Positions 27,637-63,524 of a DNA stretch of 64,000 bases are shown here, one piece after another. Location of the stretch: assembly GCA_964036045.1 (NCBI GenBank), contig OZ038378.1, positions 194,308,001 through 194,372,000 of the forward strand, in the 5' to 3' direction. The notes under the pieces were generated by a model. That model saw only the letters and a program-made list of their open reading frames with translations, was not told the origin of the DNA and ran no database searches. The position numbers and the translations under genes were made by a program. How positions within the stretch are numbered: position 1 is the stretch's first letter; every line of letters starts with the position of its first letter. The DNA comes from Eutreptiella sp. 'Long Island Sound 2002' (Eukaryota > Protista > Euglenida).

Positions 27637-28573
27637 GGGGGTATCGTGCGCTGTGCGCGCGCTGTGCGCGCTTTGCGAAAAGTAGGCCATTTTCCACCAC
27701 CGGTAGGCAGTTTTTTGGGTGTAGGATTGCCGCAGGGTACTATTGCCGTTGTGTGTCCTTGTAGCATCAACCCTCCCCCTTCTTGCATGTATGTACCCTT
27801 GCAAACGGGCACCCTGAGGCCGGTATATGGTGATACATTCTCAGGGTGTTTGCTGCGGGGCATCATCTTTTGCTCTCAGTTCTCAGACCCTCTATTGCAC
27901 TCACCATGGACTTTAATGTTGGAGATAGGGTGTTCTACACTCGCTCCAATGGGATGCGAGTTCCTGCCACAGTGGTGGGGTTTGCGCCCTACGGCTTACT
28001 CCACTCGGAGTATTTCCAAGACGCGGTGAAGGTGGTGAATCGGCAGCGCAAAGTTGAGTCCATCTCCTTTGCCATCCCGAGTGCCGACCACCGCCCCCCT
28101 CCACACGCAGCCCTTCGCCCCCACCCGACGATCGGAGAAGGAGTCCATCAAAATCGGCAACTCCATCACCCCGTGCAAAGCCGCGCGCCCCCAAGACTAC
28201 AAAACGGTCTCGGGAGGGTGGTAAGCAGCTCGCTGCCACCATGAAGATCTTGAAGGGTGGGCTGAGTTCGTTAATTTCGGAAGATTGGAAGGAAGTTCTT
28301 GAATGGCTGCTGAAGCGGAAGGAGGACACGGGCAAGATGAAGTGGGATGACGCCGCTTGGCATTTCTTACCACGATGGGGAATTGCTGACAGCAACGACC
28401 CACAGTGGGATGCCTGGCGGCGGTGGATAATTCTGAGAACACGACACATTTGAATTTCGGACTTTTGAATTGCTCATGCATGCTTCTAGAGGTGGCAGGT
28501 TTTCAGGCTGGCTGTTACCGGGATAAACACCGTAATAACTGGCGCTGTGCGCGCGCTGTGCGAAAACGCCCCC
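27637..28573 (+). mobile_element. 937-bp G5/C5 element with AAA TSD and decayed coding cargo
   Basis: The empty site AGCAAAGGGCAGCC (near 4315) becomes AGCAAA|GGGGGTATC...AACGCCCCC|AAAGGGCAGCC. GCGCTGTGCGCGCGCTGTGCG occurs in direct orientation at both ends. Confidence 0.85.
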
Positions 28574-28654
28574 AAAGGGCAGCCAGGAGGATGTGGCGCC
28601 GCATTCGTGACAAGGGGAGCGGTATGTCTGCATCAATGAGGTCTGGAACACGGA

Positions 28655-29255
28655 TTATACCCCGACCAGTGGGTTGACTGCCAGAGTCACTCTGTTTTAC
28701 AATAAAGGGCCTCCCTTTTCCTGCACTGAGCTGTAGACCAATACCGGTATCTTCTTGCATACACCTATAGATTTATGCATAGGCGTTTTACAAAGTTGCC
28801 CCTGCAATTCTTATCACATCCTTTACGGTCAGCAGTGTCTCCACACGAGGCTGGCAGCTGCAAGGGACGCACAACATTTGCACAAGTACTGACGCTTTGG
28901 ACGACCTTGCTTACACAAGCGATCCCACAAAATTTGTTGGCTGACGTCAAAACCTTTACCAGCACCCCTCATGCCGCTTTCCTACAGGCACCATCCTGTA
29001 TTGCAACACCCCCCAGCCACCCCCCTCGCCAGCCCCTACTGATGCACTCCTAGCATGTTTATCAGATATCCTACAACAAATGCAGCAGCTTCACGTACCC
29101 AGTGAACCGTGGTCTCAGGGCTGGGTACTTCCTATCCCACGCCCCATTTACAAGGGCATTGATTTTTCAAATGTCCCAGTTGTTTGTCCACGTTGACGAT
29201 AATACTATTGTGGCTGCATCCTAGGCCCAGTTGCAAGCTGCCCTCTATACCGAGT
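28655..29255 (+). pseudogene. RT relic, copy 3a
   Basis: Near-identical to 4395-4988. Confidence 0.8.
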
Positions 29256-29964
29256 GCATGCTTTGGACCCCCAAATATGAGCGCTGATTCTTGCACCGGA
29301 AAGGACATTCCATCCCAAATAGGACACTATTCCGTGCAGTTTGCGTCTCGTCCCGCCCCATTGGCTCCACGAGGCATGTATCACAGCATGCGCCTGGAAG
29401 TACAGGACTGCCATGGATCAACGTGCCCGCCCTGTGTGCAACTGCAACAGGGCCTGTGGTTCTGATGTCACTGTCCCTTCCCTCCACAGGCCTTGCCATG
29501 CCTCAAATGCCCCTTACCCCGGGCCCGGGTGCCACCACACATGTCCCCCCCCCCCCCAATGCCCCACCAAACATAACCGTCTTGAAACAAGCACATGGCT
29601 GTTGCATGGTTTGGAAGAGAAGGTCTGTCTGATCTGTGCGTTCGAACCTGATTGTGGTGGTGTTGATGGATCGCCTCGTTGGGCATATGGTTGAATGATG
29701 AAATGTTTGTGTCTGCTGGTCAACAAACTTTTAAATTCAAGGGAACACATCTCATAGGAGGTCGGCTGAAGAAGTGGAAGCAGCACATATTGGGAGAGCT
29801 CTGACTGGTGCACTGAACACAGGATTGATGCCCTCCTCCTCCTCCAATGCCAAAGGGAGAGGGGGCTTCCTTTGCATCTCAGTTTTGCTCCGTCACTGAG
29901 GATGACAAGTTGGCGCAGACCCCTTACCAAACTGTTAAATGCCGAAAACACACACAGTATATGC

Positions 29965-30441
29965 TTTTTACAAAGTTGCCCCTGCAATTCTTATAACATC
30001 CTTTATGGTCAGCAGTGTCTCCACACGAGGCTGGCAGCTGCAAGGGACACACAACATTTGCACAAGTACTGACGCTTTGGACGACCTTGCTTACACAAGC
30101 GATCCCACAATATGTGTGTATTTGTTGGCTGACGTCAAAGCCTTTACCAGCACCCCTCATGCCGCTTTCCTACAGGCACCATCCTGTATTGCAACACCCC
30201 CCAGCCACCCCCCTCGCCAGCCCCTACTGATGCACTCCTAGCATGTTTATCAGATATCCTACAACAAATGCAGCGGCTTCACGTACCCAGTGAACCGTGG
30301 TCTCAGGGCTGGGTACTTCCTATCCCACGCCCCATTTACAAGGGCATTGATTTTTCAAATGTCCCAGTTGTTTGTCCACGTTGACGATAATACTATTGTG
30401 GCTGCATCCCAGGCCCAGTTGCAAGCTGCCCTCTATACCGA
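29965..30441 (+). pseudogene. RT relic, copy 3b
   Basis: Near-identical to 5701-6193. Confidence 0.8.
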
Positions 30442-31155
30442 GTGCATGTTTTGGACCCCCAAATATGAGCGCTGATTCTTGCACCGGAAAGGACATTCCA
30501 TCCCAAATAGGACACTATTCCGTGCAGTTTGCGTCTCGTCCCGCCCCATTGGCTCCACGAGGCATGTATCACAGCATGCGCCTGGAAGTACAGGACTGCC
30601 ATGGATCAACGTGCCCGCCCTGTGTGCAACTGCAACAGGGCCTGTGGTTCTGATGTCACTGTCCCTTCCCTCCACAGGCCTTGCCATGCCTCAAATGCCC
30701 CTTACCCCGGGCCCGGGTGCCACCACACATGCCCCCCCCCCCCCCCCCAATGCCCCACCAACCATAACCGTCTTGAAACAAGCACATGGCTGTTGCATGG
30801 TTTGGAAGAGAAGGTCTGTCTGATCTGTGCGTTCGAACCTGATTGCGGTGGTGTTGATGGATCGCCTCGTTGGGCATATGGTTGAATGATGAAATGTTTG
30901 TGTCTGCTGGTCAACAAGCTTTTAAATTCAAGGGAACACATCTCATAGGAGGTCGGCTGAAGAAGTTGAAGCAGCACACATCGGGAGAGCTCCGACTGGT
31001 GCACTGAACACAGGATTGATGCCCTCCTCCTCCTCCAATGCCAAAGGGAGAGGGGGCTTCCTTTGCATCTCAGTTTTGCTCCGTCACTGAGGATGACAAG
31101 TTGGCGCAGACCCCTTACTAAACTGTTAAATGCCGAAAACACACACAGTATATGC

Positions 31156-31648
31156 TTTTTACAAAGGTGCCCCTGCAATTCTTATAACATCCTTTACGGT
31201 CAGCAGTGTCTCCACACGAGGCGGGCAGCTGCAAGGGACACACAACATTTGCACAAGTACTGACGCTTTGGACGACCTTGCTTACACAAGCGATCCCACA
31301 ATATGTGTGTATTTGTTGGCTGACGTCAAAGCCTTTACCAGCACCCCTCATGCCGCTTTCCTACAGGCACCATCCTGTATTGCAACACCCCCCAGCCACC
31401 CCCCTCGCCAGCCCCTACTGATGCACTCCTAGCATGTTTATCAGATATCCTACAACAAATGCAGCGGCTTCACGTACCCAGTGAACCGTGGTCTCAGGGC
31501 TGGGTACTTCCTATCCCACGCCCCATTCGCTTTGGCGCGCCTCACAAGGGCATTGATTTTTCAAACGTTACAGTTGTTTGTCCACGTTGACGACAATACT
31601 ATTGTGGCTGCATCCCAGGCCCAGTTGCAAGCTGCCCTCTATACTGAG
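31156..31648 (+). pseudogene. RT relic, copy 3c (third tandem repeat, found only in array copy 3)
   Basis: Near-identical to 5701-6193. Confidence 0.8.
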
Positions 31649-34279: not shown

Positions 34280-35110
34280 CCCGCCCCCCCCCTTTCTTGG
34301 CAGCCCCCCCTTCCCCACCCCCCCCCACCCAGCCCCCCCCCCCTTTCTTGGCAGCCCCCCCCCTTTGTTGCGCCGCCGGAACCGCATCTCCTCCTCATAT
34401 TCCTCCTCAGCGAGGAATCGAACCTTCATCTTCAGGGAAGCGGCTGGCTGCATTGCCGCTGCGGTACACGACCAAAAGCCCGCATTATGCACCCTTGCTC
34501 ACAGGAACGCTCTGTCTGAATGGATGGTATGAACCAGAGGCTGGGCCTGCGGCCCCCTCACAGCCACGTTATGGCCACAGTGTCTGTAGTTATATGAATG
34601 AGATTGAGCCTAACACACACACACACCACTGAGCCTCTCTCTATGAGTGCTGACGGACGACATGACAGGTTGGCCGATTGAGAGCCAGCGTACCGCAAGC
34701 CTGTCCAGCCGCCTGTGGACCTCAACCCCCCAGTACGTTAACATGCAGGCTAGAGGTTTTGGCCGACAAAACACGGCCAGAAAAGGGTAACTAGGCAAAC
34801 ATCAGTGCAACCTGTACATACGCAAAAGTGCTCCTGGAACCAACGTATCAATGGAACTGCCGAACATTGCTGCATATGCATACCAGGACGTGCATGTGTG
34901 GAGCGCTTTGTTGGCCTGCTTGCGGCCCCCCCCTTTCTTGGCAGCCCCCCCTTCCCCACCCCCCCCACCCAGCCCCCCCCCCCCTTTCTTGGCAGCCCCC
35001 CCCCTTTGTTGGCAGCCCCCCTTCCCCCCCCCCCCAGACCCAGCCCCCCCCCCCCCCCCTCTTCTTGGCAGCCCCCCTTCCCCCCCAGACCCAGCCCCCC
35101 CCCTCCCCCC
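34280..35110. repeat. C-rich minisatellite CCCTTTCTTGGCAGCCCCCC in two clusters (34280-34365, 34925-35110)
   Basis: About six copies separated by C-runs. The minus strand is a dense G-run tract. Confidence 0.9.
34405..34473 (-). ncRNA. tRNA-derived (SINE-head-like) sequence with Pol III A and B boxes
   Basis: The minus strand reads GGTCGTG-TACCGCAGCGG-...-GGTTCGATTCC-TCGCTGAGG. The A-box-like motif starts at position 8 and the B box is perfect, but the acceptor stem does not pair, so this is not a functional tRNA. Confidence 0.6.
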
Positions 35111-37497
35111 CGCCCTGAAAGTGGTCCGAGAGTGGGAGGGAGTCGGCGTATGGCCCGTTGCTACGGCCCCCCCGTGTTTCATTCCTCGTTGCCCCAGTGG
35201 CGTGGCAGACAGATTACAGGTGAGCTTCAAGTATACGTCCCGCCACCACGGGTGGTATGCGGCCCAGGTACCGCACGGGACAACATATGTTGTACTTACA
35301 CTGTCATTTCTGAACCGGCCCGTCTGGCTGAGCACTTACGAAGGACTTGTGAGTCTGAGCCAAAAAAAAAATTACATGACATGGAGGCGTGCAGCCCTTT
35401 ACACCCTTGTGCTCTGCACACATGCTACTGCCAAGCCCGTTGCTGAGGCTGCTGCCATCCCTTGTGCTGAACCCTCAGTCAAGGTGCAACCAAACCTGCC
35501 GCCAGGGTCGCAGGTAAGTCTGCAGCCAAGCCTGTGGCTGGAGAATTTTGCTATTTCGACTTATGCCCCCCCCTTTTGGTGCCTCAGCGGTTTAAGGACC
35601 GGTTCAAGAGGGGGCCGGTCTTCACACAAGCCTGCATGTTGAGTTGTGGGATTGGGTTGTGCATGCATGTGTGCTTTTATGCATATTGTTATCTGCTCCA
35701 TTAGCTCGAGCTCCCCTGGTCTGTGATCAATTGGGACACGACTGGCACTTTCAATGGGCCTGGAACTGTTCCTTCCAATATTCCTGAGTTGCATTATTCT
35801 TCTTCATTTGCATTTACATCTGAGTTGCTGTATTGGGTGAGCATGCGAATCAATGATTCAAATGTCGCATGTTCATTGGTGCTATTAGAGTTGTTGCCAC
35901 ATTGGGCTGTGGTTTTGGATTACCCTGTGCAAAGGGGTTTCATACTCATGTAAGTGCCTTTCCCTGAAGGGTGTGCCAAGAACACACATTGTAGGTGGGT
36001 TGGCATGGGCTCAAACCCACCTTCTCTGCTTCTTTTTATTATCACAAGATCTGTCAACAGCTCCAGCAGCAGCAAGCTTGGCAGCCATCTGTGATGTATG
36101 CAACGCCCTCATTCCCACATACCCGGAACAGAACTCAGGAGGAAGTTTGTGGGACGCCCTCAAGGCGTGTCAGTTGCATCCCGCTGCATCCCCTGGTGAC
36201 GGTGTACAAGTCTCAAGTACACATCCCACCATCCTCTGACGGCATGTAGGTCCTCCACACGGGATAATATATGTTGCATTTTAAGTGCCACACAGAGCCG
36301 GTCCGTCTGACCGAGCACTTATGAGGCACGGGTAAATCTGAGCAAAAAAAAAGTACATGGAACAGAACTCAACTCCTGTAGATTTGATTCACTCGCTCTT
36401 CTTTCAGAGGCTCATACCCTACCCCCTCCCTCGCGAGGACATTGTCTATGGCGGGGACATTCGGTCAATCAGAACCGACCATTGATCCCCTCGTGAGGAC
36501 AGCACCCTTGTCAGAACAATATGGGGTGCTGTTTCTGCAACTTTTGAAACCATTGGCTTTCGTGGCCCCATTTTCTGGTTGTTTATGAGGTCAAGTTTTT
36601 TCTTTGATTTGAAGCAAGGAATAGTATTGATTGCTAGGCTGCCACTTGTTGCCCATAGGTAGGATACGTCTTGCCCCATTCTGCTCCTTGCTTCAGTGCA
36701 GAGAATGTATAATGCTTGTTTTTGAGGCCAATTCAGGGTCCGATTCTGATTTTCGTTCAGGGACAGACACCAGGTGTGATGGAGCCAGCTATGATGAGGT
36801 TTCTGAATCAGGTTCTGTGTCCGATTCAAGTTCCTTGTCAAATGCATCTTCCATTTCTTTGAACAGCAGTGGTCAGGCCAGGTGTTCTGGAGGACAACGG
36901 CATGTGGATCTTGTCTAGACATCAAGGATGTTTTGCTTTGCTCTCATTGCTCATGTCCTCACGGCGCACTCAAACAGCGCCCTTGGCAGATCAGGAGGGC
37001 CATTTATTGTCATTTGGTAACTCTTTCTTTGCATACAAATACTTATTGCTCTGGTGTTGTGCAATGCCACATTTGTCGCTCGTTCTTTGGGGCAAAGAGA
37101 GTGCCTTCTTTCATTTGTAATGACAAAATTGGAGGTGGCACCCAGGGGCACCACCGTTGGTTAGGGGGTCCATATAGAAGAAAAAAGTGGAATGTGACTT
37201 GCGTTCGAATTGACGTATAGTGGCAGCTACAGGCGAACCAAGTTTGGCCCACCACAATGCTAGCGGACCCAGAGCGGTGCTCTCAGGACCAATATGCATT
37301 GGCAAATGATTCAGCATATGCTTGCGTTAGCGTATGCTTGCCTAATGCTTGCGGATATTTCGGTCCTGTAGCCACCAACTCATCCCGCAGCCATGCAATC
37401 ACACTGAGATGCAAAACAATTGGTCTCAGAAATAACACCATTTGGCAGAGGGAGTGGTCATTGCACAAAGCAAACATTGCATATGCTAAAAAGCTAG

Positions 37498-38140: not shown

Positions 38141-40618
38141 GCGCACTCAAACAGCGCCCTTGGCAGATCAGGAGGGCCATTTATTGTCATTTGTTAACTC
38201 CTTCTTTGCATACAAATACTTATTGCTCTGGTGTTGTGCAATGCCACATTTGTCGCTCGTTCTTTGGGGCAAAGAGAGTGCCTTCTTTCATTTGTAGTGA
38301 CAAAATTGGAGGTGGCACCCAGGGGCACCACTGTTCGTTAGGGGTCCATAAAAAAGTGGAATGTGACTTGCGTCCGAATTGACGTATAGTGGCAGCTACA
38401 GGCGAACCAAGTTTGGCCCACCACAATGCTAGCGGACCTAAAATGGTGCTCTCAGGACCAATATGCATTGGCCAATGATTCAACGTATGCTTGTGTCATC
38501 GAATGCTTGCCTAATGCTTGCGGATATTTCGGTCCTGTAGCCACCAACTCATCCCGCAGCCATGCAATCACACTGAGATGCAAAACAATTGGTCTCAGAG
38601 ATGACACCATTTGGCAGAGGGAGTGGTCATTGCACAAAGCAAACATTGCATATGCTAAAAAGCTAGGGCAACCGTTACCACCCCCCACCCCCCAACTGTG
38701 AGCACTAAAAGCGCTGAAAATGATGGAAACACCATCTCGCGCTCCAATTTTAAGCTGTCAACAAGAAGAGGTGCGTTCAAGAAAGTCAAAGAGCAGATGT
38801 CAAGAAGTTGGGAAGTGAATGATGGGATGTTGCATGTAGTTTGGAACAACCATTGGAGCATGGACCCGATGCTCTTGGCCGTCCCAACGCGCCTCTTGTG
38901 GTATACAAACCCCTGAACAACCACCGTAGCAGCTAGGACCAGCGGATTTACTCTAGTAGAAGAAAAAAGGGAGGCCCGCGTGACCTTACATGCTATACCC
39001 TGACAACACCATCCTTTTTGTCCCTTGTACCTTCGATAACCCCACCAACAGGGGCATGGGGAAGGTCTCTCTTCAAGGTGCCTGGCCGAAGGCAATAGAA
39101 CTTCTACAACCCCAGAGATCTACACTACTTCTCTTACGGCACCTTTTTTCGGTGGTGGTGTGCACTGTAAGGAGTACAGCTTCATGCCTGGTCATGGCCG
39201 TACCCCCCCTCCCCCTTGCGCAAGCACGGCCTTGTCTAAGCACAGAGTGGTGAGAACAGTGATTTCCTGCCGGTGGGATACCGGGGGTGACGGCCATCAT
39301 CGGATTATGGCTAAGCATAGAGTGGGCGTTGAAACACTGTTTTTAGGAAATTTTGGGACCACTGTTTTTGTCGTCCCAGATGTAAGATGGGGTTTAAAAC
39401 CATTCTACCACACATTGCAACCCATGTTTGTTTTGATGTGATTCTTAGCCAGTCCCGATATTCCCCTTCCACAGCCTGTCACTATCTGCATCTTCTGGAA
39501 ATGGGCGGTCATGTGTGTTTGTCATCATGTGTGTCGCACGCAAGCAAAGTGTTGTCTAAGCACCTAGTAGGTGTGAACCGCTGTTTAGCCTGGTTTTTTG
39601 GGACCACGGCTGTGCTTGCGCAGGGGGCGGGGGTTACATTCAACTAGAACCACTATCCTACAAGACCTTTGGGTATTTGGCCTACAGTCTATAATCCTGC
39701 TCCTTCGCGGGGCAATACATAGTTGATGGCTGTTCAAGTGTGCATTTCGCTTTTGGGCAGGTTGGGGCTTGAGGTTGGTGGGGCAGATCTTGCAGGTTTA
39801 TATTGGAGAAATGCCCAGGAAAGGTGGTTGTCAACTGCAGTGCAATGATTTCCTCATTGGGTGCACGGTCAAAGGGTTGGAGTGCACTTCCAAAGTGCCT
39901 AGTGGTGTGACCCATGATACATTGGACAACACACCAATGTGCAACAATGCATGGCTGCAACCAACGCAGAAAGTTCCACAGACCTGCAGCGTAAAACTGC
40001 TTTCCATGGTGGTGCAATTTTCAAAACCATCTGACGCTTGACCTGTACATTGGCATCATACAGTCCCGAACAGTGGGGATTCCTTGCTGCACTAGGGCTG
40101 CACCATGGCCGCGTGCTAGAGTGGCAAACAGCCCTGAGCACTGATGTCGGCTAGTACAGGAGACGGTGGCCGCTTTCAGCATATCCCTACGGCAGAACCC
40201 AGATACAAGCCCTGTTGTTTACGTGTTGGGGGGAGCGTTAGTGCGCCAGGCCCACGCCAGGCATCTTTTTTGACCCGTGCCCCACCGGTGACCTTTTAGG
40301 GGGTGCGCACTAAGTGCAGTGCGTGCGCAGTGCAACTATTTGGACATCTAGCCATCCTAGAACCCCATACTTTGTGATACCTGCAAGATCTGCCCCACCA
40401 AACTCAAGCCCCAACCTGCTCAAGAGCCAAATGCACACTTGAGACAAGTACAGGAGACAAGTAGACAGTGGCCGCTTTCAGCATATCCCTGAGGCAAACC
40501 CCAGATACAAGCAATGTTTTTTTCGTGTTGCATGTAATTGTGGGTTGAACGAAGTTGCTGCACAACATTTGCACATGTTGTCTCCAGTTCTCATAAGAGC
40601 TTATTTCTTGACGCACCG

Positions 40619-42383: not shown

Positions 42384-43064
42384 CATGTACATGTATGGGC
42401 TGAGGGCTGCCCAAAACCCCTGGTTTTAGGTCACCTTTTTTTGTGACCAGATATCGTGACCTTTTTCATGACCAAGGGCAGGGGGGTTGGTGAGGGGGGG
42501 GATCCGGGCCGGACACCCAACCCCCCAGTTAGATCCAACCCTGGTGCAAATGCGGCTGCAAGCCTGTGGGCATATATGGGCCTGTGGGCATGTGCTGCTT
42601 TGCATGAAGGGGGCAGGTTTGTGCCTGTGGCATCGCTTGGCTTGAGGTACTGTTACACAATGTATGCATATCCTCTGTTGATGGCAACCACATGTTTCTC
42701 ATGCATTGCAGGATGGCAATCCTTCCTTTTTGTGCACAAATGGTGCGAGACCACCATTGCTCCTGCACTATGCAAGGGGGGCAGCCGGCATCCTATTTTG
42801 TGGATGTTCCATCTGCTTTTGGACCGTGGCCCTGCCCTGACTGCCAAGCAGAAACCCGCCAGTGACCCTGATCCTGTGGAACCTGAACCCTTAAGGGTTC
42901 CGTTACAACAGCACCCTCAGCCGCAGGCAGGACGCACAAGGGATGTCCCAACTGGGCACTACTTCCACACGGCATCCCCCAAGCAAAGGGCAGCCGGGAG
43001 GATGTGGCGCCGCATCCGTGACAAGGGGAGCGGTATGTCTGCATCAATGAGGTCTGGAACACGG

Positions 43065-47589: not shown

Positions 47590-49815
47590 GGGAATGCCGT
47601 GCACACAGTGCAAAGTGTTGTATGTTGGCAACTTCTTGAACCCTAGTTTTGGCCCCTTTTCACAAGTTTGTTGTTCCATACCAGCGCTTTTTCACGCTTC
47701 TTGTGCATAGAGAGATCCCACAGCTCCGTGCGTAGCTCGCAAGAGCAACAATCCGCAACACCTCGACATTGCGAGCGCTAAGTGAGCCGGAAATCAACAG
47801 CACCCTGCCGAAAGACCGACTCGCCCAATGGATGCGGAATACCGTTGCTATTTTGCTGCGGGCATATTTTGCCTCCAGGGCAGGAGGCATGGGCGAAATT
47901 GAGCGCCGAACGGGTTTTCAAGGCCAGCACGACCCCGCTACCATGAAACTTGGGGACCTCTTTGCGTGGTGGATCCGAGATTGTTTTCATCGGTCTCAGT
48001 CACTCAATCGGTGCATGCAAGGCGCTACACAAGTGCCGGTGGAGCCGGCGCTGCCGCACAATAGTGTGGGACCTTGGCGGAAGCGTGGGCAGCCCTCGGC
48101 GAAAACTTCATGTGGTGCAGCGTGAAGTTTAGGGCGGTTGGTGGGGTCCTGCACTAGCAGTTGAGGGAGGGGGAGTGGATTCCAATCGGCGCGGAGCCGA
48201 GCGGGAACTGCTAGCATTGTGTTCAGCATGGGGCACCCATGCCGGCACACCATTGGCACTTCTACTGCCTGCACTGGTCTTGACGGGACCAACGTGACCC
48301 GCCCCGGTTGGTGCCGGGTTCGGCACCATGTCCGTCGCCTCCACTATCGCCCACATCGCATCCCGGACTCGCGGTTTGATGAAGCGACCACCCCCGGGGA
48401 GAGTGCCATGCTCTCCTTGTGCCACCGCACACGCGCCCAGTATGGCTCCCGTCTATAGGCCCTTACGGGGGCGTGGGTTCTATCTCGGGGGCATTGGCAG
48501 GCTTGCTCGCAGAGCGTGCGAGCTCCGGTGCCACGGCCTTGGCCTTGCGGGGCATAACGTCCATGGTGCGCGTGGTGGAAGACCTGGAGTGGCTCACACC
48601 TATGGTCACACAGCGGAGGATCGCGGCGGGTGCCCCGGCTTCTCGGATGTAGGAGTACCTCCCGCCCAAGGCCATCTGTCTCCTCGCCCACAAAGCGCAA
48701 GGGTCCCGCCATGGCCAACTCCTCCTGGCAATAGCCTCCCTTAGCTGGGTCTGCTTCCTCGGGGTCGGGGAGACGACCTCGCTACGGGTCGGGGACTTCG
48801 CCACCCTTGGGTTTCTCCAATTCTGGAACTCCAAGACGGGGGTAGAGGACTGGGTCTTCTGGACACTCGCTGGATACGCGGAGAGCATCCAGGCTTGGAT
48901 CCATGCACACGCCATGGGGACAGACCTCAAGGCCGACCACTTGGTCTAGCGGCCTCCGGTTTGCAGGCTACTTTGGTGGAGTGCCTGGCGGCCTTCCCCT
49001 ACTCCAGGGCGTGCTACCTCGCCCTGCTACCCGGGGGGCGGTGGCCTGCCCACTACAAGTGGTGGGGTTGGTGGTAGAGTATTGCGGTGGCTATGCAGTA
49101 TGCTACCCAGTGGAAGGACCCCGACGTCATCACACAGATCCACACACACGCCCACCTTTTGCACCTTGTTTCCGATGATGGTAACCACGGTCGTGTGCAG
49201 TGGTGGGAGAAGCGTTGTGACTCCACCTGTGTACGTACCCAAGTTGCTTGAATGGATGCGGATGCATACACCATGGAGGAATTTTGGATGAAATATGGTC
49301 ATCCTCAGCTGTACTCCGAAAAACTGTTGAGCCCGTAGGGGAAAAAAAAAGGAATATGGTCATCCTCAGCTTCTTGACCGGGAGGCATTGTTTCGTTTCT
49401 TTTTTTTTGGATGAAACACACCCCACTTGCAGAAACCGGTGCTTTCATGTCGGGCACCAAAGGGTGTTCAGAGGCGGCTTGGCGTCAAAGCGTTGCCTGT
49501 GTTCGTGAATATCTTAACCATGTTGTACAAGAAATTTGCTGGGCTGATAGGTTCAATATTCAATTTTGCATTCAGATGCAGGTCCGTCACCCTCCTTATG
49601 GACCATGGGACCATGTCCCATCTCATGTTTGGACTGATAAAAGCAACTCTGCCGCCGCGCAAGATGAAGGATAGGATGAGGTAGATGTGTGTGCATTGTG
49701 TAGTGCTCCACCATCAAAGGTTGTGGTGAGTGCCAGGAACATTATTGTGATGAATGTATTATTGTGATGAAGGTATTATTCTTTATTAGCTTATACACGA
49801 GTAATACACATTGAT
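47590..49815 (+). mobile_element. Unique composite insertion; both end regions are homologous to the 61216 element and the interior contains a YR relic
   Basis: 47590-47700 (GGGAATGCC..CAGTGCAAAG..GAACCCTAGTTTTGGCCCCTTTT) matches 61218-61320. 49600-49790 (GPWDHVPSHVW..CALC..CGECQEHYCDEC) matches 61590-61780 (GAWPHVPESVW..CQLC..CGTCHLNMCASC). Confidence 0.65.
48419..49105 (+). pseudogene. Degenerate tyrosine recombinase of DIRS/Ngaro/VIPER-type YR elements
   Basis: WVCFLGVGETTSLRVGDF (box I; catalytic R appears as G at 48761), FWNSKTG (catalytic K), then after a frameshift YLALLPGG (H..RRGG) and WWGWW*SIAVAMQY (GRW.S...Y). Confidence 0.7.
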
Positions 49816-51531
49816 GTTGAATTTTGCTATTTCGACTTATGCAGTGTGCTTTGTAGGGAAGGTTTGAGGTCCACTCTTGGTGGACTTGGGGGCTCTTCTA
49901 GAGGAGGGTAAATCCGGGGTGAAAGTCAGGATAGTTTCTACAAAAGTAGCGCGCTGCGCAAACACCCCCCCCTTTGGTGCCTCAGCGGTTTAAGGACTGG
50001 TTCAATAGGGGGCCGGTCTTCACACAAGCCTGCGTGTTGAGTTGTGGGATTGGGTTGTGCATGCATGTGTGCTTTTATGCATATTGTTATCTGCTCCATT
50101 TGCTCGAGCTCCCCTGGTCTGTGATCAATTGGGACACGACTGGCACTTTCAATGGGCCTGGAACTGTTCCTTCCAATATTCTTGAGTTGCATTATTCTTC
50201 TTCATTTGCATCTACATCTGAGTTGCTGTATTGAGTGAGCATGCGAATCAATGATTCAAATATGTCGCATGTTCATTGGTGCTACTAGAGTTGTTGCCAC
50301 ATTGGGCTGTGGTTTTGGATTACCCTGTGCAAAGGGGTTTCATACTCATGTAAGTGCCTTTCCCTGAAGGGTGTGCCAAGAACACACATTGTAGGTGGGT
50401 TGGCATGGGCTCAAACCCACCTTCTCTGCTTCTTTTTGTTATCACAAGATCTGTCAACAGCTCCAGCAGCAGCAAGCTTGGCAGCCATCTGTGATGTATG
50501 CAACGCCCTCATTCCCACATACCCGGAACAGAACTCAGGAGAAAGTTTGTGGGACGCCCTCAAGGCGTGTCAGTTGCATCCCGCTGCATCCCCTGGTGAC
50601 AGTGTACAAGTCTCAAGTACACATCCCACCATCCTCTGACGGCATGTGGGTCCTCCACACGGGATAATATATGTTGCATTTTAAGTGCCACACAGAGCCG
50701 GTCCGTCTGACCGAGCACTTATGAGGCACGGGTAAATCTGAGCAAAAAAAAAGTACATGGAACAGAACTCAACTCCTGTAGATTTGATTCACTCGCTCTT
50801 CTTTCAGAGGCTCATACCCTACCCCCTCCCTCGCGAGGACATTGTCTATGGCGGGGACATTCGGTCAATCAGAACCGACCATTGATCCCCTCGTGAGGAC
50901 AGCACCCTTGTCAGAACAATATGGGGTGCTGTTTCTGCAACTTTTGAAACCATTGGCTTTCGTGGCCCCATTTTCTGGTTGTTTATGAGGTCAAGTTTTT
51001 TCTTTGATTTGAAGCAAGGAATAGTATTGATTGCTAGGCTGCCACTTGTTGCCCATAGGTAGGATACGTCTTGCCCCATTCTGCTCCTTGCTTCAGTGCA
51101 GAGAATGTATAATGCTTGTTTTTGAGGCCAATTCAGGGTCCGATTCTGATTTTCGTTCAGGGACAGACACCAGGTGTGATGGACCCAGCTATGATGAGGT
51201 TTCTGAATCAGGTTCTGTGTCCGATTCAAGTTCCTTGTCAAATGCATCTTCCATTTCTTTGAACAGCAGTGGTCAGGCCAGGTGTTCTGGAGGACAACGG
51301 CATGTGGATCTTGTCTAGACATCAAGGATGTTTTGCTTTGCTCTCATTGCTCATGTCCTCACGGCGCACTCAAACAGCGCCCTTGGCAGATCAGGAGGGC
51401 CATTTATTGTCATTTGGTAACTCTTTCTTTGCATACAAATACTTATTGCTCTGGTGTTGTGCAATGCCACATTTGTCGCTCGTTCTTTGGGGCAAAGAGA
51501 GTGCCTTCTTTCATTTGTAATGACAAAATTG

Positions 51532-51587
51532 AATTGGAGGACCGTCTTCCCTGGGGTGGGGATGGACAAGGGGGGGGGGGGGGAGGG
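51532..51587. mobile_element. 56-bp G-rich insertion flanked by the 14-bp duplication TAATGACAAAATTG
   Basis: Repeats at 51518-51531 and 51588-51601; a single copy at 13628-13641. Confidence 0.85.
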
Positions 51588-52381: not shown

Positions 52382-52551
52382 GAGGGTGCCGACCGGGCGG
52401 TGTGCGCAGTGCAGCGCGCAGTGCAATATCAGCCTGGCGCACACAATATCCCTCCTTTCCGGTCCGTCCCTGCCTACCCTCCGAAAGGGTGTACATTGCA
52501 CTAAAGCGTTGTATGCTCTGACGCACGCGGTGCGCGGTGCATTTCAGCACC
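52382..52551 (+). mobile_element. 170-bp G5/C5-type MITE (GAGGGTGCCGA...TCAGCACC) at a rearrangement junction
   Basis: Near-TIR with CGCAGTGC cores on the left and CGCGGTGC cores on the right, in the same orientation. The left flank is array sequence and the right flank is RNase H sequence. Confidence 0.6.
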
Positions 52552-52800
52552 TTGGATTCCGAATACCTGTAGAAAGGCATAACGGAATGGTCGGTGAAAT
52601 GGCACCGACACGGGTGGCGGGTTAAGAATAGGGAGGTGGGGCACAAGGACTTGTGGGAACAGATTTTTCTGCTACGGCGGGAGGCGGGGTCGCTGTTGCA
52701 GTTGGTGTGGACGCCTTCCCATATGCAGGTAGTGGGAAATGATAGGGCAGATGCATTGGCAGAGGAGGGCCGGCATCAACATCCACATAATACAAAACGG
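52552..52800 (+). pseudogene. RNase HI C-terminal half (retroelement-type), 5'-truncated with an in-frame stop
   Basis: LDSEYL*KGITEWSVKWHRHGWR..VGHKDLWEQI..LQLVWTPSH..GNDRADALA matches the RNase HI motifs DSxY, WxxxGW, NxDLW, WxxxH and GNExADxLA. Confidence 0.85.
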
Positions 52801-54427
52801 AGGTCGGAGGAGCCGAGGCCGCCACTGTTGTGGGAGGAGGTGGGGCTGCTTCCCATGCGATCCGATGTATCGCCCTCGGCAGGGGGGGGGGGGTCGACAA
52901 AGCCCCCCGTTTCAGCCGGAGCGAGGTCAAGTGTCAGGGGCTCGTTAGCGTTGTCAGAGGGGTCACACACGTCGACGGATTCCTCCACGGCAGATTGGGT
53001 GAGTGAGTCCAGTGATGGAGGGTCGGGCTTCAGCACAGACGTCAGTGATCGACAGCGGGAGCGCAAAAGAGCGAGGGGAGCAGCATAGCATAGTTGGGCG
53101 TGTGCAGCTCTTCGATTTTTCAGAGGGCGGTTTGAACCCCGGGGAGGGCTGGGAACCGCTGAACGTCCCGCAGCCCCAAGGGATGTTTATTTTATGGTCG
53201 CGCATGGAAGGTGAGTGGTGAGCATACGAGAAAGTGCACGGGGGCCGGGCCCCGCAGTGCGCTCCGTCGTCGCGGCTCGTGGAGGCCACGGCGCCGACGA
53301 TCATGAACAGATGCTGCTTCTATGCGGCCACTGTAGATAAGGTGGCAGCAATGATGCAGACAGTGGGGTGTAGGGGGGTGGGGTGGATGGCGGTTAGTTA
53401 ACCACATCGCTAGCGTAGTATACTGGCAGTGCACGGGGGCCTCGTCACGGAGAGCGTAGGATGGATGCCCGGCGTGTAGATCATGGCACCGACGGGCAGA
53501 CCCCTGAGCGCGGCTTCGCCGCTCCAGCTAGTGATTTCCTGCGGGTGGGATACCGGGGGTGACGGCCATCGTCGGATTATGGCTAAGCACAGAGTGGGCG
53601 TTGAAACGCTGTTTTTAGGAAATTTTGGGACCACTGTTTTTGTCGTCCCAGATGTAAGATGGGGTTTAAAACCATTCTACCACACATTGCAACCCGTGAT
53701 TCTTAGCCAGTCCCGATATTCCCCTTCCACAGGCTGTCACTATCTGCATCTTCTGGAAATGGGCGGTCATGTGCGTTTGCCATCCTGTGTGTTGCACGCG
53801 AGCATAGTGTTGTCTAAGCACCTGGTGGGCGTTGAACCGCTGTTTTGTCTGGTTTTTTGGGACCACGGCTGTGCTTGCGCAGGGGGAGGGGGGTTACATT
53901 CAACTAGAACCAGTATCCTACAAGACCTTTGGGTATTTGGCCTACAATCTATAATCCTGCTCCTTCGCAGGACAATACATAGTTGATGGCTTAGCGGACA
54001 TCACTGCTCAGGGCTGTTTGCCACTCTAGCACGCGGCCCTGGTGCAGCCCTAGTGCAGCAAGGAAACCCCACTGTTCGGGACTGTATGATGCCAATGTAC
54101 AGGTCAAGCGTCAGATGATTGTGGAAATTGCACCACCTTGGAAAGCAGTTTTACGCTGCAGGTCTGTGGAACTTTCTGCGTTGGTTGCAGCCATGCATTG
54201 TTGCACATTGGTGTGTTGTCCAATGTATCATGGGTCACACCACTAGGCACTTTGGAAGTGCACTCCAACCCTTTGACCGTGCACCCAATCAGGAAATCAT
54301 CGCACTGCAGTTGACAACCACCTTTCCTGGGCATTTCTCCAATATAAACCTGCAAGATCTGCCAAGAAGTGCACTGCAACCCTCTGCCCCACCAAACTCA
54401 AGCCCCAACCTGCCCAAGAGCGAAATG

Positions 54428-56846: not shown

Positions 56847-58017
56847 TGCAAATCAGCGATGGATTTAATTTTGGCGCTACTCGGGGGTCCGGGTCCGGGG
56901 CCGGGGGGGGCGGTCAGTTTTTGTGACTGATCACAAAAAACATACAGGGCCATAGTGAGAAAGTGCGGCCCCGAAAAAATCTTGTGACCAAAAAGGTTGT
57001 CTTCGGTAGAATGTCCCTCCTGTGTCTGGCTGTAGTGCAAATTGACCGTGACTGTGTCTGCTTGCACTTTTGCTCCTCCCTTGCATCTATCAGTACCAGT
57101 TCATCTAGTGACAGTTGCATCTATCAGTACCAGTTCATCTAGTGACAGTGGCAGCGATAGTGGCACTGGCAGCGACAGTGACAAGTGACAGTGATGGTAG
57201 CTGCAGGGAGCAAGACAATTTTGTCACTGTGAGTGATGATAGTGGATGACATTGAGGCATAGAATGACATTGAATGACGTTAACAATGTTGCATCCACAG
57301 GGCCCTATGCTTATCATGAGTGCTGTTGCATCCCCCCCCCCCCCCTTATGTACATGTATGGGCTGAGGGCTGCCCAAAACCCCTGGTTTTAGGTCACCTT
57401 TTTTTGTGACCAGATATTGTGACCTTTTTCATGACCAAGGGGGGGGGGTTGGTGAGGGACCCCGGACCCCCCCCCCCCCAGTTAGATCCAACCCTGGTGC
57501 AAATGCGGCTGCAAGCCTGTGGGCATATATGGGCCTGTGGGCATGTGCTGCTTTGCATTAAGGGGGCAGGTTTGTGCCTGTGGCATCGCTTGGCTTGAGG
57601 TACTGTTACACAATGTATGCATATCCTCTGTTGATGGCAACCACATGTTTCTCATGCATTGCAGGATGGCAATCCTTCCTTTTTGTACACAAATGGTGCG
57701 AGACCACCATTGCTCCTGCACTATGCAAGGGGGGCAGCCGGCATCCTATTTTGTGGATGTTCCATCTGCTTTTGGACCGTGGCCCTGCCCTGACTGCCAA
57801 GCAGAAACCCGCCAGTGACCCTGATCCTGTGGAACCTGAACCCTTAAGGGTTCCGTTACAACAGCACCCTCAGCCGCAGGCAGGACGCACAAGGGATGTC
57901 CCAACTGGGCACTACTTCCACATGGCATCCCCCAAGCAAAGGGCAGCCGGGAGGATGTGGCGCCGCATCCGTGACAAGGGGAGCGGTATGTCTGCATCAA
58001 TGAGGTCTGGAACACGG

Positions 58018-59127: not shown

Positions 59128-59604
59128 TTTTACAAAGTTGCCCCTGCAATTCTTATAACATCCTTTACGGTCAGCAGTGTCTCCACACGAGGCTGGCAGC
59201 TGCAAGGGACACACAATATTTGCACAAGTACTGACGCTTTGGACGACCTTGCTTACACAAGCGATCCCACAATGTGTGTGTATTTGTTGGCTGACGTCAA
59301 AGCCTTTACCAGCACCCCTCATGCCGCTTTCCTACAGGCACCATCCTGTATTGCAACACCCCCCAGCCACCCCCCTTGCCAGCCCCTACTGATGCACTTT
59401 CAGCATGTTTATCAGATATCCTACAACAAATGCAGCGGCTTCACATACCCAGTGAACCGTGGTCTCAGGGCTGGGTACTTCCTATGCCACGCCCCATTCA
59501 CAAGGGCATTGATTTTTCAAATGTCCCAGTTGTTTGTCCACGTTGACGACAATACTATTGTGGCTGCATCCCAGGCCCAGTTGCAAGCTGCCCTCTATAC
59601 CGAG
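59128..59604 (+). pseudogene. RT relic, copy 5b
   Basis: Homologous to 5701-6193. Confidence 0.8.
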
Positions 59605-61215
59605 TGCATGTTTTGGACCTCCAAATATGAGCGCTGATTCTTCTCACCCTCTACCTCTCCTCTGCTGCTGAATCATCTGAAAGGGACATTGCAATCCAAT
59701 TGAAAAGTAATTCCTTCCCCTGCATCTGTGGGATCAGTATACTGCTCAGCTTTGTGTGGTGTGAAATGCACTTCAGCTTTCCCCACTGGGAAAGTGGACA
59801 CCTGTGCAGTACTGCAGGCTTTGCATCAAGGAGTTGTCATCCTTTACCTTCCCTTCATCGGCATATGTTGGAGTTTCACGGGATGATTGTGCCGCACTGT
59901 GATGATACACAGTTGAAGCCATGAATCTTCCATCCTGTGCTCCGGTATCCCATGTGCCTGACCCATGTCTCGCAGTTGCTAGACAGTGAAAGGGCCTTTA
60001 CTCCACTACACAACGTCTTCGTTGCATCTGTGCTGTCCTGTGGACGTTCTGCTGTCATTTGCATCTGCATTGGGTCTCTGAAGGGAACGTGGTGAGAGAC
60101 AATGTTTATCTTGTTCATTGGAAACAGTAACGTTGGGTTTTAGGGGAGGGGGGCAAGAGACAACAGGCGGGAGCGGCGGGATGGGGGGCTCCCGAAGCTC
60201 CGCGGCAGGCAAAGGGGGTCCCACACGACCCTCGGACCTGTGATCATTTTTCACAACGGGGATGAACAGGGGGCAGCCGTGCTCCCCGGTTGCATGGCCC
60301 ATGGGGGATGGGGTAGGGGGATGACCCCCCCTCCTGCCCCCCTCGGGTCGGGCAGAAGTGCAGAGAAGGGCAAGTGGCCCGCCCCTCGTCAGGGAGGGGA
60401 GGGCAGCTTACGAGCCCAGGGTCAGGGCCCTGAAGGGCAGCAGGAGCAGATACCTGACCCCCTGATTGCAGGTCCTTCCCTTGCGCCGAGTACACCCCGG
60501 GTGAAGCGCCAGGAGGTCAGGCAGCGGGCCTAGCTCGCCCCCCATCTCTAAGCCAATCCGCGTATGCACAGCGTGCAGGACCTACAATGTCTGGCCTGTT
60601 TCCACATCTTTTGGAATTATGGCATTCAGTGGTCCTTTTGTCCGGTTGTCTATGAAGGGTTTTCTGTGATTTGGGGCTGAGGATGATCCTTTGGGGTTGC
60701 CAAGACAACATCTGGTCACCCTCTCGTTCACCTCCGTCCCTAGTCTGGCCTAGTCTGGTGCAACCAAGCAACTCCTTGTCGGAGCAGCGGGAGGTGCTAT
60801 TTTTGGCAATTCCAGAAGGTCCAGTGAGCTGCGCTTGGCAGGGATCTTTCAGGCAAGCTGACGGGTTGATGGGTGTACTGGTAACAGGGAAAATGCTCCA
60901 ACAACAAAGGCCCTTGGCGGGTAGCCGCAACAGCTAGGCCACTTCCCATGCCGGTGCTCCTGTGCATGCTCATGGCCATTCCCATGACCACAACCCAGGG
61001 AGCGAAATCTTGGCCTTGTGTGTGTCTGCAGGTTTCCTTGCTCGTTGTCCACCCTCCTTGCACACAGCCCTTTCCTAACATGGGCTTGTCCAAGCACGAC
61101 GACCCCGTGTTTCCACACTTTTGCGTTTTGTTTTTTGGAACCATGGTTGTTGCGGTTCCAATCCAATAGAGAATGTGGTTTGTAGCTTGGTGCAGGCTGC
61201 AAGAAGGGTCAATAT

Positions 61216-61997
61216 GGGGGAATGCCATGCACGCAGTGCGCACGCAGTGCAAAGTTTTGGATGTCGGCCAATACTCGAACCCTAGTTTTGGCCCCTTTTG
61301 ACAAGTTTTTGGTTCCATACAAGGGTTTTTTGGCCTCCCAAGCATTTAGGACGTGGCATATTTGAATTGTCAACCATTTCCTAGATTCTTGTCCATTTTG
61401 GAATGTAAATTGTGTAAATGCCCCTTCCCTGTGGCAGAGTCTGCTGGGGCTGTGTAGCCAATTCGCCGAGACCGCCACCTGAAGATCCTAGCATACTTGA
61501 GGGCAAGACAAGGGCGACATTTCCAAAAATCATTGGGCCCCAACCGTCCGGTGCTATTGAGGAAACCGGGACAATCTTTGAATCCACGCTTTGTTGCGTG
61601 GTGCGTGGCCTCATGTGCCAGAGTCTGTATGGGCACAGGAGGAGGCAACCGTTGTAGAGGAAGAAAATGATGACGGTGTTTGTTGCCAATTGTGTGGCCA
61701 CCGTCCCGGTGATATATCCGAGTGTGGCACTTGCCACTTGAACATGTGTGCATCTTGCATGCCTTTGCATAGTTGTACTTTATAAGGCTGATTTCCTTGT
61801 TCTAAGGACACCGGATTACCAAGCTGCAGGCAGTTTTGTTGTTCTGATTTGGGCTTTGCTGCTTCGCCGTGCTACTGGACAGATGAGTGGTATTCTTGGG
61901 TGAGTATCCTAGCCTCTGCGTGCGCACTATGCACGCAGTGCGCACGTAGTGCGCACGCAGTGCGCACGCAGTGCGCACACAGTGCAAACACTTAGCC
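61216..61997 (+). mobile_element. 782-bp G5-type element with 11-bp GTGCGCACGCA repeats at both ends and a Cys-rich coding remnant
   Basis: The empty site GTCAATATGGGTGGC becomes GTCAATAT|GGGGGAATGCC...CTTAGCC|AATGGGTGGC. About five 11-bp units lie at 61925-61985 and about two at 61228-61250. Confidence 0.8.
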
Positions 61998-63195
61998 AAT
62001 GGGTGGCAAAGTGGTGGTGTAGCTGTAATTCCATGTCCTCTTGTGTTCTGGGGTGTATGCTGGCCTGTTGCTTTGTATTGTCATGTTTTGAGGCTCAGGT
62101 TGGCTTATGTTTGCAACATGTGTTCTGTGTTACATGCCTCGTGGTAACACGGGCTGGTCCAAACACGGCGACCCCATGTTTCCGCATTTTTGCCCATTGA
62201 ACTAGGACCCGACCTGTGTTAGGACAGTGGGTGGGGGTTACACTTGTGCATGGCCAGAATTGACTGGGTTATCATGAGGGCCCCCATTTGCCTTGACCAC
62301 AAATACCACCCAGCTCCCCCCTTGGGCCGAAATCCCAACCCCCACCCCCCAATCCCTTGAAGGTTTACCAACCTGTGTCACAATTGCAATTGCCCTGCAT
62401 GCATGCCATGCATGCCTGCCTGTGTTTTGCAAAACGCTCAGACTTTACAATGTATCCTCCCATTCCGCCCCCCTCCCAAAAAATATTAAAGCTAACAGAA
62501 TTGCCCCCCCTCCCCACGCCCCAGCAATCATTCTGCCAGCTTGCCGGGGTTTGTTGTGGCCCTCAGTCCCCATGTACTGTTGAATTTAGGTTAGAGGTCT
62601 TGGCGGACACCAGCGCCAGACTGTACATACGCAGATGTTTGACATTGATCTGAATCATCAGTGGAACTGCCGAACATTGCTGTATATGCATACCAGGACG
62701 TGCATGTGTGGAGCGCTTTGTTGACCTGCATGCGGCCCCTGCCCCAGCCGGAATGGACAATCATGCGCCCCCACCCCAGCCCCCCAAACAATATTCCCCT
62801 CCCCCCGGCCCGGAGCGGACAACCATGGCCCGGCCATTTTCGACCAAATCTTGGACCAAATCTTTTCTGCTCCAAGAGCACACTGGGAAGCCCACGGGCA
62901 TGGTGGTTCCTGCTGCATGCCCTGGAGTCAGAGCCAGATCAGACTAGCGCAAGTGATGTTCCACCCCCCTCCCCCCTCATCATCGTTTTCAAAGCACCTC
63001 TTCACCTTGACAACCCTAGAATGGTGCATTTCTGCAAACGGCAAATTGTCATTTACTGCGTTAAATGATTGGTTTCCAGTGCGCACCTTCTCTGGTCTGT
63101 AATCCATTCAATGAGCCAGAAACTGTTTCTTATGTCATTCCTGGGTTGCATAGTTTCTCTTCATTTCCATTGACATGCAAGTGTGCAGGCTCTTT

Positions 63196-63524
63196 GGGGG
63201 AGTATCAGACGGGGTGCGCGCGCGGTGCATGCGCGGTGCGGGTACTGGGGTTGTTCCGTAGATCCAGAGCCAATCAGGGGGAATGGTAACGCCTCAGTCT
63301 CAGGGCCATAATCCTGGTGACTGGGAAGCATTTTGCCGAAAACTAGGCCCGCCGAATTGTTCTGCCGAATTGTTGGGATTTCTTCGCCGAATTAGGGGGG
63401 TGGTTGCTCAGAGCCCACCAGGTACCATTTACAACTCCTCTCCCAATAGACCATCTCTTAGGGAAGTTGTTCAAATACCTGACGCGGTGCGGACGCGGTG
63501 CACGCGCGGTGCGGATACTCCCCC
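63196..63524. mobile_element. 329-bp MITE with perfect 11-bp TIR and TTT TSD
   Basis: CTCTTT|GGGGGAGTATC...GATACTCCCCC|TTTGCAGG versus the empty site CTCTTTGCAGG (11309, 20648, 33926, 47056). CGCGGTGC cores occur at both ends in direct orientation. Confidence 0.92.

Follow-up and report, generated by a model that had tools for sequence, protein, structure and literature searches.

The Tourist MITEs stem from the PIF/Harbinger superfamily, as do several domesticated genes of hosts. Its members and their Tourist-like MITEs—maize PIF, for example, or Ping/Pong/mPing of rice—are characterized by a DDE_Tnp_4 (IS5-like) transposase; by 3-bp target-site duplications (TSDs); by a T-W-A-biased target in a palindromic C...G context (CWCTTAGWG in the case of maize PIF); and by many short deletion derivatives that have only their ends in common with the master. 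How the ends are recognized is known, to our knowledge, from essentially one reconstructed fish element. In other transposase superfamilies, En/Spm (a CACTA element with TNPA-binding repeats), Ac/Ds, the P element, Mu and Tn7 all carry several short binding sites inside their tips, and their two ends are not equivalent. According to two papers (PMC9710019, PMC2836001), DNA binding and catalysis are split between proteins in PIF/Harbinger elements, and in zebrafish Harbinger3_DR a Myb-like protein has been shown to bind a 9-bp subterminal motif.

The window analysed here is a 64,000-nt stretch of the forward strand of Eutreptiella sp. 'Long Island Sound 2002' (GCA_964036045.1, OZ038378.1:194,308,001-194,372,000). 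The four insertions that it contains (Table 1) are best explained, with a probability of roughly 80%, as members of a non-autonomous, very abundant PIF/Harbinger group, and the short cores inside their ends as candidate docking sites. The superfamily traits listed above recur here, the transposase in the 61216 family and the T-W-A target as a bias. Unlike described PIF/Harbinger elements, they have relaxed TSDs, very short inverted repeats, polar subterminal arrays whose units all point one way at an 11-bp phase, a ~2.3-kb master in which no Myb-like ORF1 is recognizable, and a transposase that bears a conserved C-terminal Cys-rich tail. The layout of the end repeats is thus unusual, but the carrier is a known kind of transposon, not a new kind of element. 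A search of the window against Rfam gave no match, and a literature search found no paper linking Euglena with Harbinger elements.

Table 1. Insertions, end arrays and remnants in the window (positions within the 64,000 nt)
Feature	Position	Strand	Remarks
Element 1 (27637 family)	27637..28573	+	937-bp internal-deletion derivative, GGGGG...CCCCC; core variant CGCTGTGC; placed by family-match ends and empty sites
Element 1 left TSD, AAA	27634..27636		single AAA at three paralogous empty sites
Element 1 right TSD, AAA	28574..28576		paralogous empty sites
Element 1 left array	27649..27667	+	two cores 11 bp apart; degenerate third at 27671-27678
Element 1 right array	28543..28561	+	two cores, oriented as left array; last core ends 12 nt from tip
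Element 2 (52385 family)	52385..52551	+	~170-bp deleted copy of ~310-320-bp MITE family; GGTGCYGA...GCACC; no TSD
Element 2 left array	52405..52424	+	two CGCAGTGC cores, 12 bp apart
Element 2 right array	52526..52540	+	two CGCGGTGC cores that overlap, at 7-bp spacing
Element 3 (61216 family)	61218..61997	+	780-bp deletion derivative of ~2.3-kb Harbinger master; core variant CGCAGTGC; family ends GGGAATGCC...CACTTAGCC
Element 3 left array	61232..61250	+	two cores; first begins at element nt 15
Element 3 right array	61934..61985	+	five phased units, some degenerate; one to four in other copies
Transposase gene remnant in element 3	61606..61785	+	last 59 codons and stop, Cys-rich tail included; by translation
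Element 4 (63196 family)	63196..63524	+	329-bp MITE, 11-bp perfect TIR GGGGGAGTATC; core variant CGCGGTGC
Element 4 left TSD, TTT	63193..63195		single TTT at four paralogous empty sites
Element 4 right TSD, TTT	63525..63527		paralogous empty sites
Element 4 left array	63210..63239	+	three units; first degenerate here
Element 4 right array	63483..63512	+	three units, oriented as left array; last ends 12 nt from tip
Diverged, right-truncated element 3 relative	47590..49818	+	related left end with one core; transposase remnant
Old left-end-like remnant	1698..1732	+	GGGGG and two phased cores; the eIF4E ORF follows about 210 bp downstream

Elements 1, 3 and 4 are true insertions, because empty sites persist in sister copies of the duplicated eIF4E unit within the window; besides those of element 4, these lie in three paralogs for element 1 (4316-4322, 42984-42990 and 57937-57943) and in two for element 3 (9104-9108 and 10111-10115). 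Movement is by cut-and-paste with a 3-bp target duplication, perfect in 27 of 27 copies of the 63196 family and in 25 of 26 of the 61216 family, where the ends of element 3 recur in twenty-five other copies, all with perfect 3-bp TSDs. In the window copy of element 3, one extra base lies on each side (G 61217, A 61998) between the family ends and ATG (61214-61216 and 61999-62001), so that the TSD reads as ATG plus one extra base per side, or as a 5-bp ATGGG. The sequence-only reading had given TAT/AAT here, and had proposed 3-bp A/T duplications generally; AAA and TTT stand for elements 1 and 4, but the triplets are not limited to A and T. It had also found no paired TSD at element 2, and this is borne out: the TSD is missing because a retroelement fragment forms the right flank. 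Family matches to element 2 begin at about 52382 and stop at 52551, and homology to the paralogs ends at 52382 and returns at 53530; its left boundary can be placed only to within about 3 nt (52382-52385).

At 51 distinct insertion sites, C precedes the TSD in 27 and G directly follows it in 39. Within the TSD the first base is T at 25 of the 51, the second A or T at 35, and the third A at 26. As many as 25 kinds of triplet occur, and TAA and TTA together account for only 4 of the 51; what the sites show is a preference for a relaxed C|TWA|G rather than the strict TWA triplet of PIF/Harbinger. Perfect duplications of variable sequence, confirmed by empty sites, point to the staggered cuts of a DDE enzyme.

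The elements had been thought to be served by one shared transposase, with diverse cargo between their ends. They prove instead to be four separate high-copy families, comprising at least 3,841 (element 1), 370 (element 2), 3,558 (element 3) and 1,837 (element 4) first-look candidates, and each has its own core variant: T in element 1, A/G in element 2, A in element 3 and G in element 4. Of the common end architecture, the co-directional cores inside both ends survive, with the spacing in element 2 departing from the rest; the G5...C5 termini ascribed, with near variants, to all four elements are present in two. The inverted tips are short and G-rich/C-rich in every family, ranging from 2 to 11 bp—8 bp in the 27637 family (as read from the L025 copy) and about 8 bp in the 52385 family, while the 61216 family has only GG..A..G, with 2-3 symmetric bases. 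The interiors are not host DNA but each family's own sequence, shrunk by nested internal deletions; in the 61216 family these form a series at 99% identity. Matches to element 1 begin at 27637 and stop at 28573, and longer relatives have additional DNA at about 28423. Thousands of copies share its entire interior, which is therefore family sequence; the ORFs in it, considered as captured cargo, have no credible Pfam match (SH3_12, E = 0.02; RRS1, E = 0.013), nor did they have a useful Atlas neighbour. A 293-bp relative of this element, met by chance, has the TSD AAG. Copies of the 63196 family are usually 223 bp long.

Longer copies of the 61216 family lead up to a ~2.3-kb master whose sole recognizable gene encodes a DDE_Tnp_4 transposase (PIF/Harbinger, IS5-like), and this settles the superfamily; the resemblance to PIF/Harbinger remarked upon at the outset was real. 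The ORFs of two copies, L054 and L055, match PF13359 with E = 5e-11 and 2e-12, respectively, and L055 holds the DDE domain, both family ends and the TSD TGT. The match to the IS5 family NF033581 is weak, below the cut-off. Among relatives, the D, D and E positions of the alignment show little or no variation, and the Cys-rich tail is retained at 58-60% protein identity. The remnant in element 3 is 93% identical to the C-terminus of P0001, a PF13359 protein. A PDB sequence search with the transposase gave no match, and an AlphaFold2 model of P0001 (38-sequence alignment; mean pLDDT 45) was too poor for use. For the other three families, the common end layout suggests a transposase of the same superfamily. 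The genome has at least 3,193 DDE_Tnp_4 candidates in several lineages, and so family-specific partners are more likely than a single shared enzyme.

The core is an 8-bp polar motif, CGCNGTGC (CGC-N-GTGC), present in one to six copies inside each tip at 11-bp spacing. In 52 complete copies, 293 cores run forward and none in reverse, and the spacing is 11 bp in 160 cases and 22 bp in 5. Their register is constant: counted from the left tip, the first core starts at nt 15, and 12 nt separate the end of the last core from the right tip. The window contains 30 matches to CGCNGTGC, against 7.0 ± 2.5 expected; 29 are on the + strand, and so is every one of the 12 arrays that have at least two cores. 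Genome-wide, CGCNGTGC-N3-CGCNGTGC occurs 22,494 times, compared with 65 for the reversed control, and the two-core motif at spacings N4-N13 combined occurs 4,345 times. Among the matches listed, all 24 neighbouring array pairs lie on the same strand, and 22 of the 24 have the same N at both ends; where checked, this variable base is family-specific and identical at the two ends. That the cores are co-directional, phased at one helical turn and tied to element ends had been claimed from the sequence, and is confirmed. Multiple short sites inside non-equivalent ends are a likeness to En/Spm, Ac/Ds, the P element, Mu and Tn7, which belong to other superfamilies; in En/Spm and Ac, however, the motifs occur in both orientations.

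A sequence-specific DNA-binding module may dock at these cores and so bring the transposase to the ends. Spaced at 11 bp, the bound proteins would sit on one face of the helix; and with polar sites that all face one way, the left end would not be equivalent to the right, and the transposition complex probably assembles asymmetrically. Zebrafish Harbinger3_DR (Sinzelle et al. 2008), as those two papers describe it, offers the nearest parallel: a short subterminal motif—9 bp there, 8 bp here—is the likely dock that recruits the transposase. In the fish element a Myb-like protein, separate from the transposase, does the reading. The A-variant core plus the next base forms a 9-bp palindrome (CGCAGTGCG), and so a symmetric reader would barely sense polarity in the A-variant family.

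No Myb/SANT/MADF-like ORF lies in the 5' region of the master, within the 0.9 kb that precede the transposase gene. Genome-wide, PF13837 (Myb_DNA-bind_4), PF12776 (Myb_DNA-bind_3) and PF10545 (MADF) found no match in a six-frame profile search run without a positive control, which a divergent or intron-split Myb-like partner could escape. Generic Myb (PF00249) found 53, a gene-like number compared with the DDE_Tnp_4 candidates. Because no Myb-like gene is detectable, the core reader is most likely the transposase itself—through an N-terminal helix-turn-helix-like region, perhaps, or a C-terminal zinc module—or else an unrecognized partner. Tentatively, and knowing that the odds are against so specific a scheme, we suggest a Harbinger lineage that dispenses with the Myb partner, in which the transposase reads a family-specific CGC-N-GTGC code, the complex is asymmetric, and N defines private families. 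If so, the C-terminal zinc module is perhaps the code reader, the left and right ends are functionally distinct, and a change of the single base N separates one family from another.

Might the arrays be passengers, instead—repeats of alternating purines and pyrimidines, prone to slippage and potentially able to form hairpins or Z-DNA—and the transposase recognize the tips only? Copies that are 99% identical do differ in unit number, from one to six, as slippage predicts, and the palindromes GTGCGCAC and CGCAGTGCG are present within units. We think this unlikely, nevertheless: families with unrelated interiors agree in core, orientation, 11-bp spacing and, to the nucleotide, register; not one core among the 293 is reversed; the variable base agrees between an element's two ends; and tips with 2-3 symmetric bases, as in the 61216 family, are too short to define an end.

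A role at the level of RNA or transcription—in transcript processing, or in removal of the element from host transcripts—would explain why the same motif strand appears at both ends and why elements run in the direction of genes. The window's six independent insertions all share the orientation of the eIF4E genes, and on contig 1 elements of like orientation are clustered (22 runs versus 29.8 expected, p about 0.02). Nonconventional introns of Euglena, moreover, are thought to derive from MITE-like elements, and their splicing code, N3-CDG...CH'G-N5-6|R, involves complementary trinucleotides (PMC12501133). By inspection, however, the ends do not match this code: positions +4 to +6 are GGG, GGA or GAA whichever sliding register is taken, a complementary CHG is absent at 5-6 nt from the 3' boundary, and the same CNG, not a complementary pair, occurs at both ends. 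The orientation bias is weak, and segmental duplication could produce it; we consider such a role quite improbable. That these are elements of another superfamily, either CACTA/EnSpm, which also have 3-bp TSDs and subterminal repeats, or Crypton-like, directly oriented ends being typical of elements driven by (tyrosine) recombinases, is hardly credible given termini of GGGGG, GGG or GGTGC and not CACTA, DDE_Tnp_4, not a Transposase_21 type, as the sole transposase that elements with such ends were found to carry, the DDE-type duplications and empty sites described above, and a supposed recombinase stretch with no Pfam match at E = 10.

The genome supplies tens of thousands of very young copies, with 99% identity and intact reading frames of 410-500 aa. 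The end code is simple, countable and family-specific, fixed in register and direction, and has no visible Myb partner, and so the roles of orientation, phasing and the reader region of the transposase are directly testable. The families also furnish a practical key for annotating a repeat-rich euglenid genome, and might yield an active transposon tool for Euglena.

Two further remnants lie in the window. In the diverged relative of element 3, the transposase gene remnant occupies about 49378-49760, its DDE core deleted, and about 1.7 kb of the interior is unassigned; it was here that the tyrosine-recombinase relic was suspected and rejected. The old left-end-like remnant has been copied with every unit of the eIF4E array, and is present also near 16666, 25018, 40299 and 55294.

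The four insertions belong to the PIF/Harbinger group, and so are not a new kind of element. What distinguishes this variant is its relaxed target and minimal inverted repeats, and subterminal arrays of an 8-bp core—CGC-N-GTGC, N being a family-specific base—that are strictly one-way, phased to one helical turn, and family-coded. It apparently has a single gene, encoding a zinc-tailed transposase. The group has been active here very recently. No published link between Euglena and Harbinger elements was found in the literature searched.

The window is an array of segmental duplications, each unit carrying one intronless eIF4E-domain ORF. Because the units are 93-99% identical, an insertion in one can be checked against the empty site in the others, and elements 1, 3 and 4, first recognized from sequence alone, prove by this comparison to be insertions. 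The site of element 1 is empty in three sister (paralogous) units, which carry one AAA where the filled site reads AAA-GGGGG...CCCCC-AAA, and matches to its family elsewhere in the genome begin and end precisely at 27637 and 28573. Where element 4 gives TTT-GGGGGAGTATC...GATACTCCCCC-TTT, a lone TTT is found in four sister units, and so the target-site duplications (TSDs) proposed for these two elements hold. Element 3, absent from two sister sites, is thus also a true insertion. Its family ends in GGGAATGCC and CACTTAGCC; the window copy has the TSD ATG, not the proposed TAT/AAT, with one additional base between ATG and the canonical end on both sides or, alternatively, a 5-bp duplication. Both ends of element 2 match those of its family, and its TSD is unreadable because the right flank has been replaced by an unrelated piece of ~1 kb, together with which it takes the place of 167 bp of the unit. 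This piece is probably a retroelement fragment. The G5...C5 tips, ascribed with near variants to all four elements, occur in two of the four families and not in the other two.

For the 63196 and 61216 families, named for the starts of elements 4 and 3, 30 loci each were fetched. A perfect 3-bp TSD flanks 27 of 27 complete copies of the former and 25 of 26 of the latter, the sole exception being the window copy. A 293-bp relative of element 1, met by chance in locus L025, is flanked by a TSD of AAG. Three 63196-family loci (L028, L029 and L030) agree exactly in their flanks, share the TSD CAA, and are segmental duplicates of one insertion rather than independent events. Over 51 distinct sites, the TSD favors T, then A/T, then A, its first position nearly devoid of G and its last without C; C precedes it in 27, and G directly follows in 39. 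The target is thus a relaxed C|TWA|G, which is also the core of the site targeted by maize PIF. The elements move by DDE-type cut-and-paste, the target being cut with a 3-bp stagger.

Matches to CGCNGTGC number 30 in the window (7.0 +/- 2.5 expected), 29 of them on the + strand, and the 12 window arrays with at least two phased cores all lie on +. Across the genome (2.28 Gb, 2,317 contigs, eukaryotic), pairs of cores at 11-bp spacing number 22,494, versus 65 for the reversed pattern; spacings of 12-21 bp, pooled, give 4,345 versus 1,391 in the control. Array pairs 0.15-1.3 kb apart, among the genome matches listed, are same-strand in 24 of 24 cases (chance 6e-8), and the variable base, counted by eye, is identical at both ends in 22 of these. 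The 52 complete copies contain 293 forward cores and no reverse ones, spaced 11 bp (n=160) or 22 bp (n=5) apart. Polarity, phasing and the tie to element ends are thus real, and far above chance. The sequence-only reading was right in these respects: cores point the same way at left and right ends and repeat with a period of ~11 bp.

The cores are family-specific, polar and fixed in register. Counted from the left tip, the first begins at nt 15; 12 nt separate the end of the last from the right tip. This register was read in the 63196 family, the 61216 family and the L025 relative of element 1, families whose interiors are unrelated. The direct repeat between the two ends of an element comprises the array block and a few flanking bases on each side; after the left array, part of the right tip is repeated. 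Arrays hold 1-6 core units, the number differing among 99%-identical copies. In the A-variant (N = A), core plus next base form a perfect 9-bp palindrome, and so few positions confer polarity there; T- and G-variant cores are clearly asymmetric.

An RNA-level role of the one-way repeats would account for the motif lying on one strand at both ends and for elements being co-oriented with genes: in the window, the six independent insertions that bear arrays all run with the eIF4E genes, and orientation is clustered along the first 6.4 Mb of contig 1 (22 runs versus 29.8 expected, p ~0.02). The element ends depart from the published code of nonconventional introns, however (PMC12501133), and these runs, like the co-orientation, may reflect transcription strand bias or an effect of segmental duplication. 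Passive slippage fails to explain the arrays, for it does not account for unrelated families sharing one register and one orientation, each with N matched between its ends. Membership among CACTA or recombinase elements is excluded by the termini, transposase type and TSDs.

The PIF/Harbinger assignment, first suggested by likeness, is substantiated by the 61216 family, copies of which are 99% identical and differ by nested internal deletions. Complete copies span 0.7-1.85 kb, longer ones extend past the edges of their loci, and we estimate the master at ~2.3 kb. The longest members, proposed earlier as the place to look for a DDE ORF, contain one: it scores above the curated cut-off for DDE_Tnp_4 (PF13359; E = 5e-11 and 2e-12) and weakly, below cut-off, for IS5-family transposases. 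One locus, L055, combines the DDE domain, both family ends and a TSD; element 3 keeps the final 59 codons. A word search recovered 83 relatives, with identity down to 44%; none of these ENA proteins is named. The transposase alignment shows an invariant D in VAVD and nearly invariant D and E in HDGAY and RVEH, respectively. The C-terminal tail, CxxC-x7-9-CxxC-x4-CxxC-x3-HxC, is retained in lineages only 58-60% identical, and so is under selection. The genome has at least 3,193 DDE_Tnp_4 candidates, and open frames in the 61216 family reach ~500 aa. Elements 1, 2 and 4 represent separate families with at least 3,841, 370 and 1,837 first-look candidates, respectively. Element 1 is a deletion derivative (breakpoint near 28423) whose small ORFs are family sequence and gave no credible domain matches. 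Because the interiors are family sequence, their unrelatedness signifies separate families rather than cargo capture, and the notion of diverse cargo falls.

In this superfamily a Myb-like ORF1 protein normally binds the DNA and the transposase catalyses; in Harbinger3_DR, the ORF1 protein binds a 9-bp subterminal motif (PMC9710019, PMC2836001). Here, in contrast, no Myb-like ORF lies in the 0.9 kb preceding the transposase gene. The three Pfam families that typify Harbinger ORF1 proteins gave no matches in 2.28 Gb, in a search without a positive control for them; a generic Myb domain gave 53 in the same kind of search. The case for the absence of a Myb-like partner is moderately strong and no stronger, because of that missing control and because an intron-split gene could escape. 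We suggest that the cores serve to dock a DNA-binding module, which would bring in the transposase or set its position. If the Myb absence holds, the cores would be read by the helix-turn-helix-like N-terminal region of the transposase, by its zinc tail, or by some unrecognised factor. A protein bound to such co-directional polar sites would face the cleavage site at one end and face away from it at the other, and so the two ends could not be equivalent. Asymmetric ends occur in the Tn7, Mu, P and Ac transposon systems; we know of no described Harbinger with co-directional, phased ends.

Table. Positions of elements, genes and other features in the window
Feature	Position	Description
Element 1	27637-28573	
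Element 2	52385-52551 (left end to within ~3 nt)	
Element 3	61218-61997	
Element 4	63196-63524	
DNA adjoining element 2	52552-53530	~1 kb, unrelated; weak RNase H match, ORF 52594-53088
eIF4E ORFs, 445 aa	starts 1912, 16880, 25232, 55509	Pfam IF4E, E = 5e-13
eIF4E ORF, shorter version, 437 aa	start 40538	
Segment in opposite orientation among units	1130-1552 vs 16097-16519, 24441-24863, 39731-40153	423 bp, 98-99% identity
C-rich low-complexity tract	34300-35115	long; C runs, 14-51-bp periodicities; in one unit only
Diverged element	47590-49818	interior 47690-49370 GC-rich, many overlapping ORFs, no Pfam match
Left-end-like remnant	1698-1732; paralogs near 16666, 25018, 40299, 55294	GGGGG and two phased CGCAGTGC-type cores; ~210 bp upstream of eIF4E ORF
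Right-end-like sequence	49940-49970; paralogs near 12115	GCGC-rich, then AAACA and C run, then TTT; common to units

A tyrosine-recombinase relic within the diverged element was considered, and has no Pfam support. The left-end-like remnant, present upstream of every eIF4E ORF, is older than the duplication of the units; no right end matching it was identified. The right-end-like sequence may be a remnant of a further old element from the same group.
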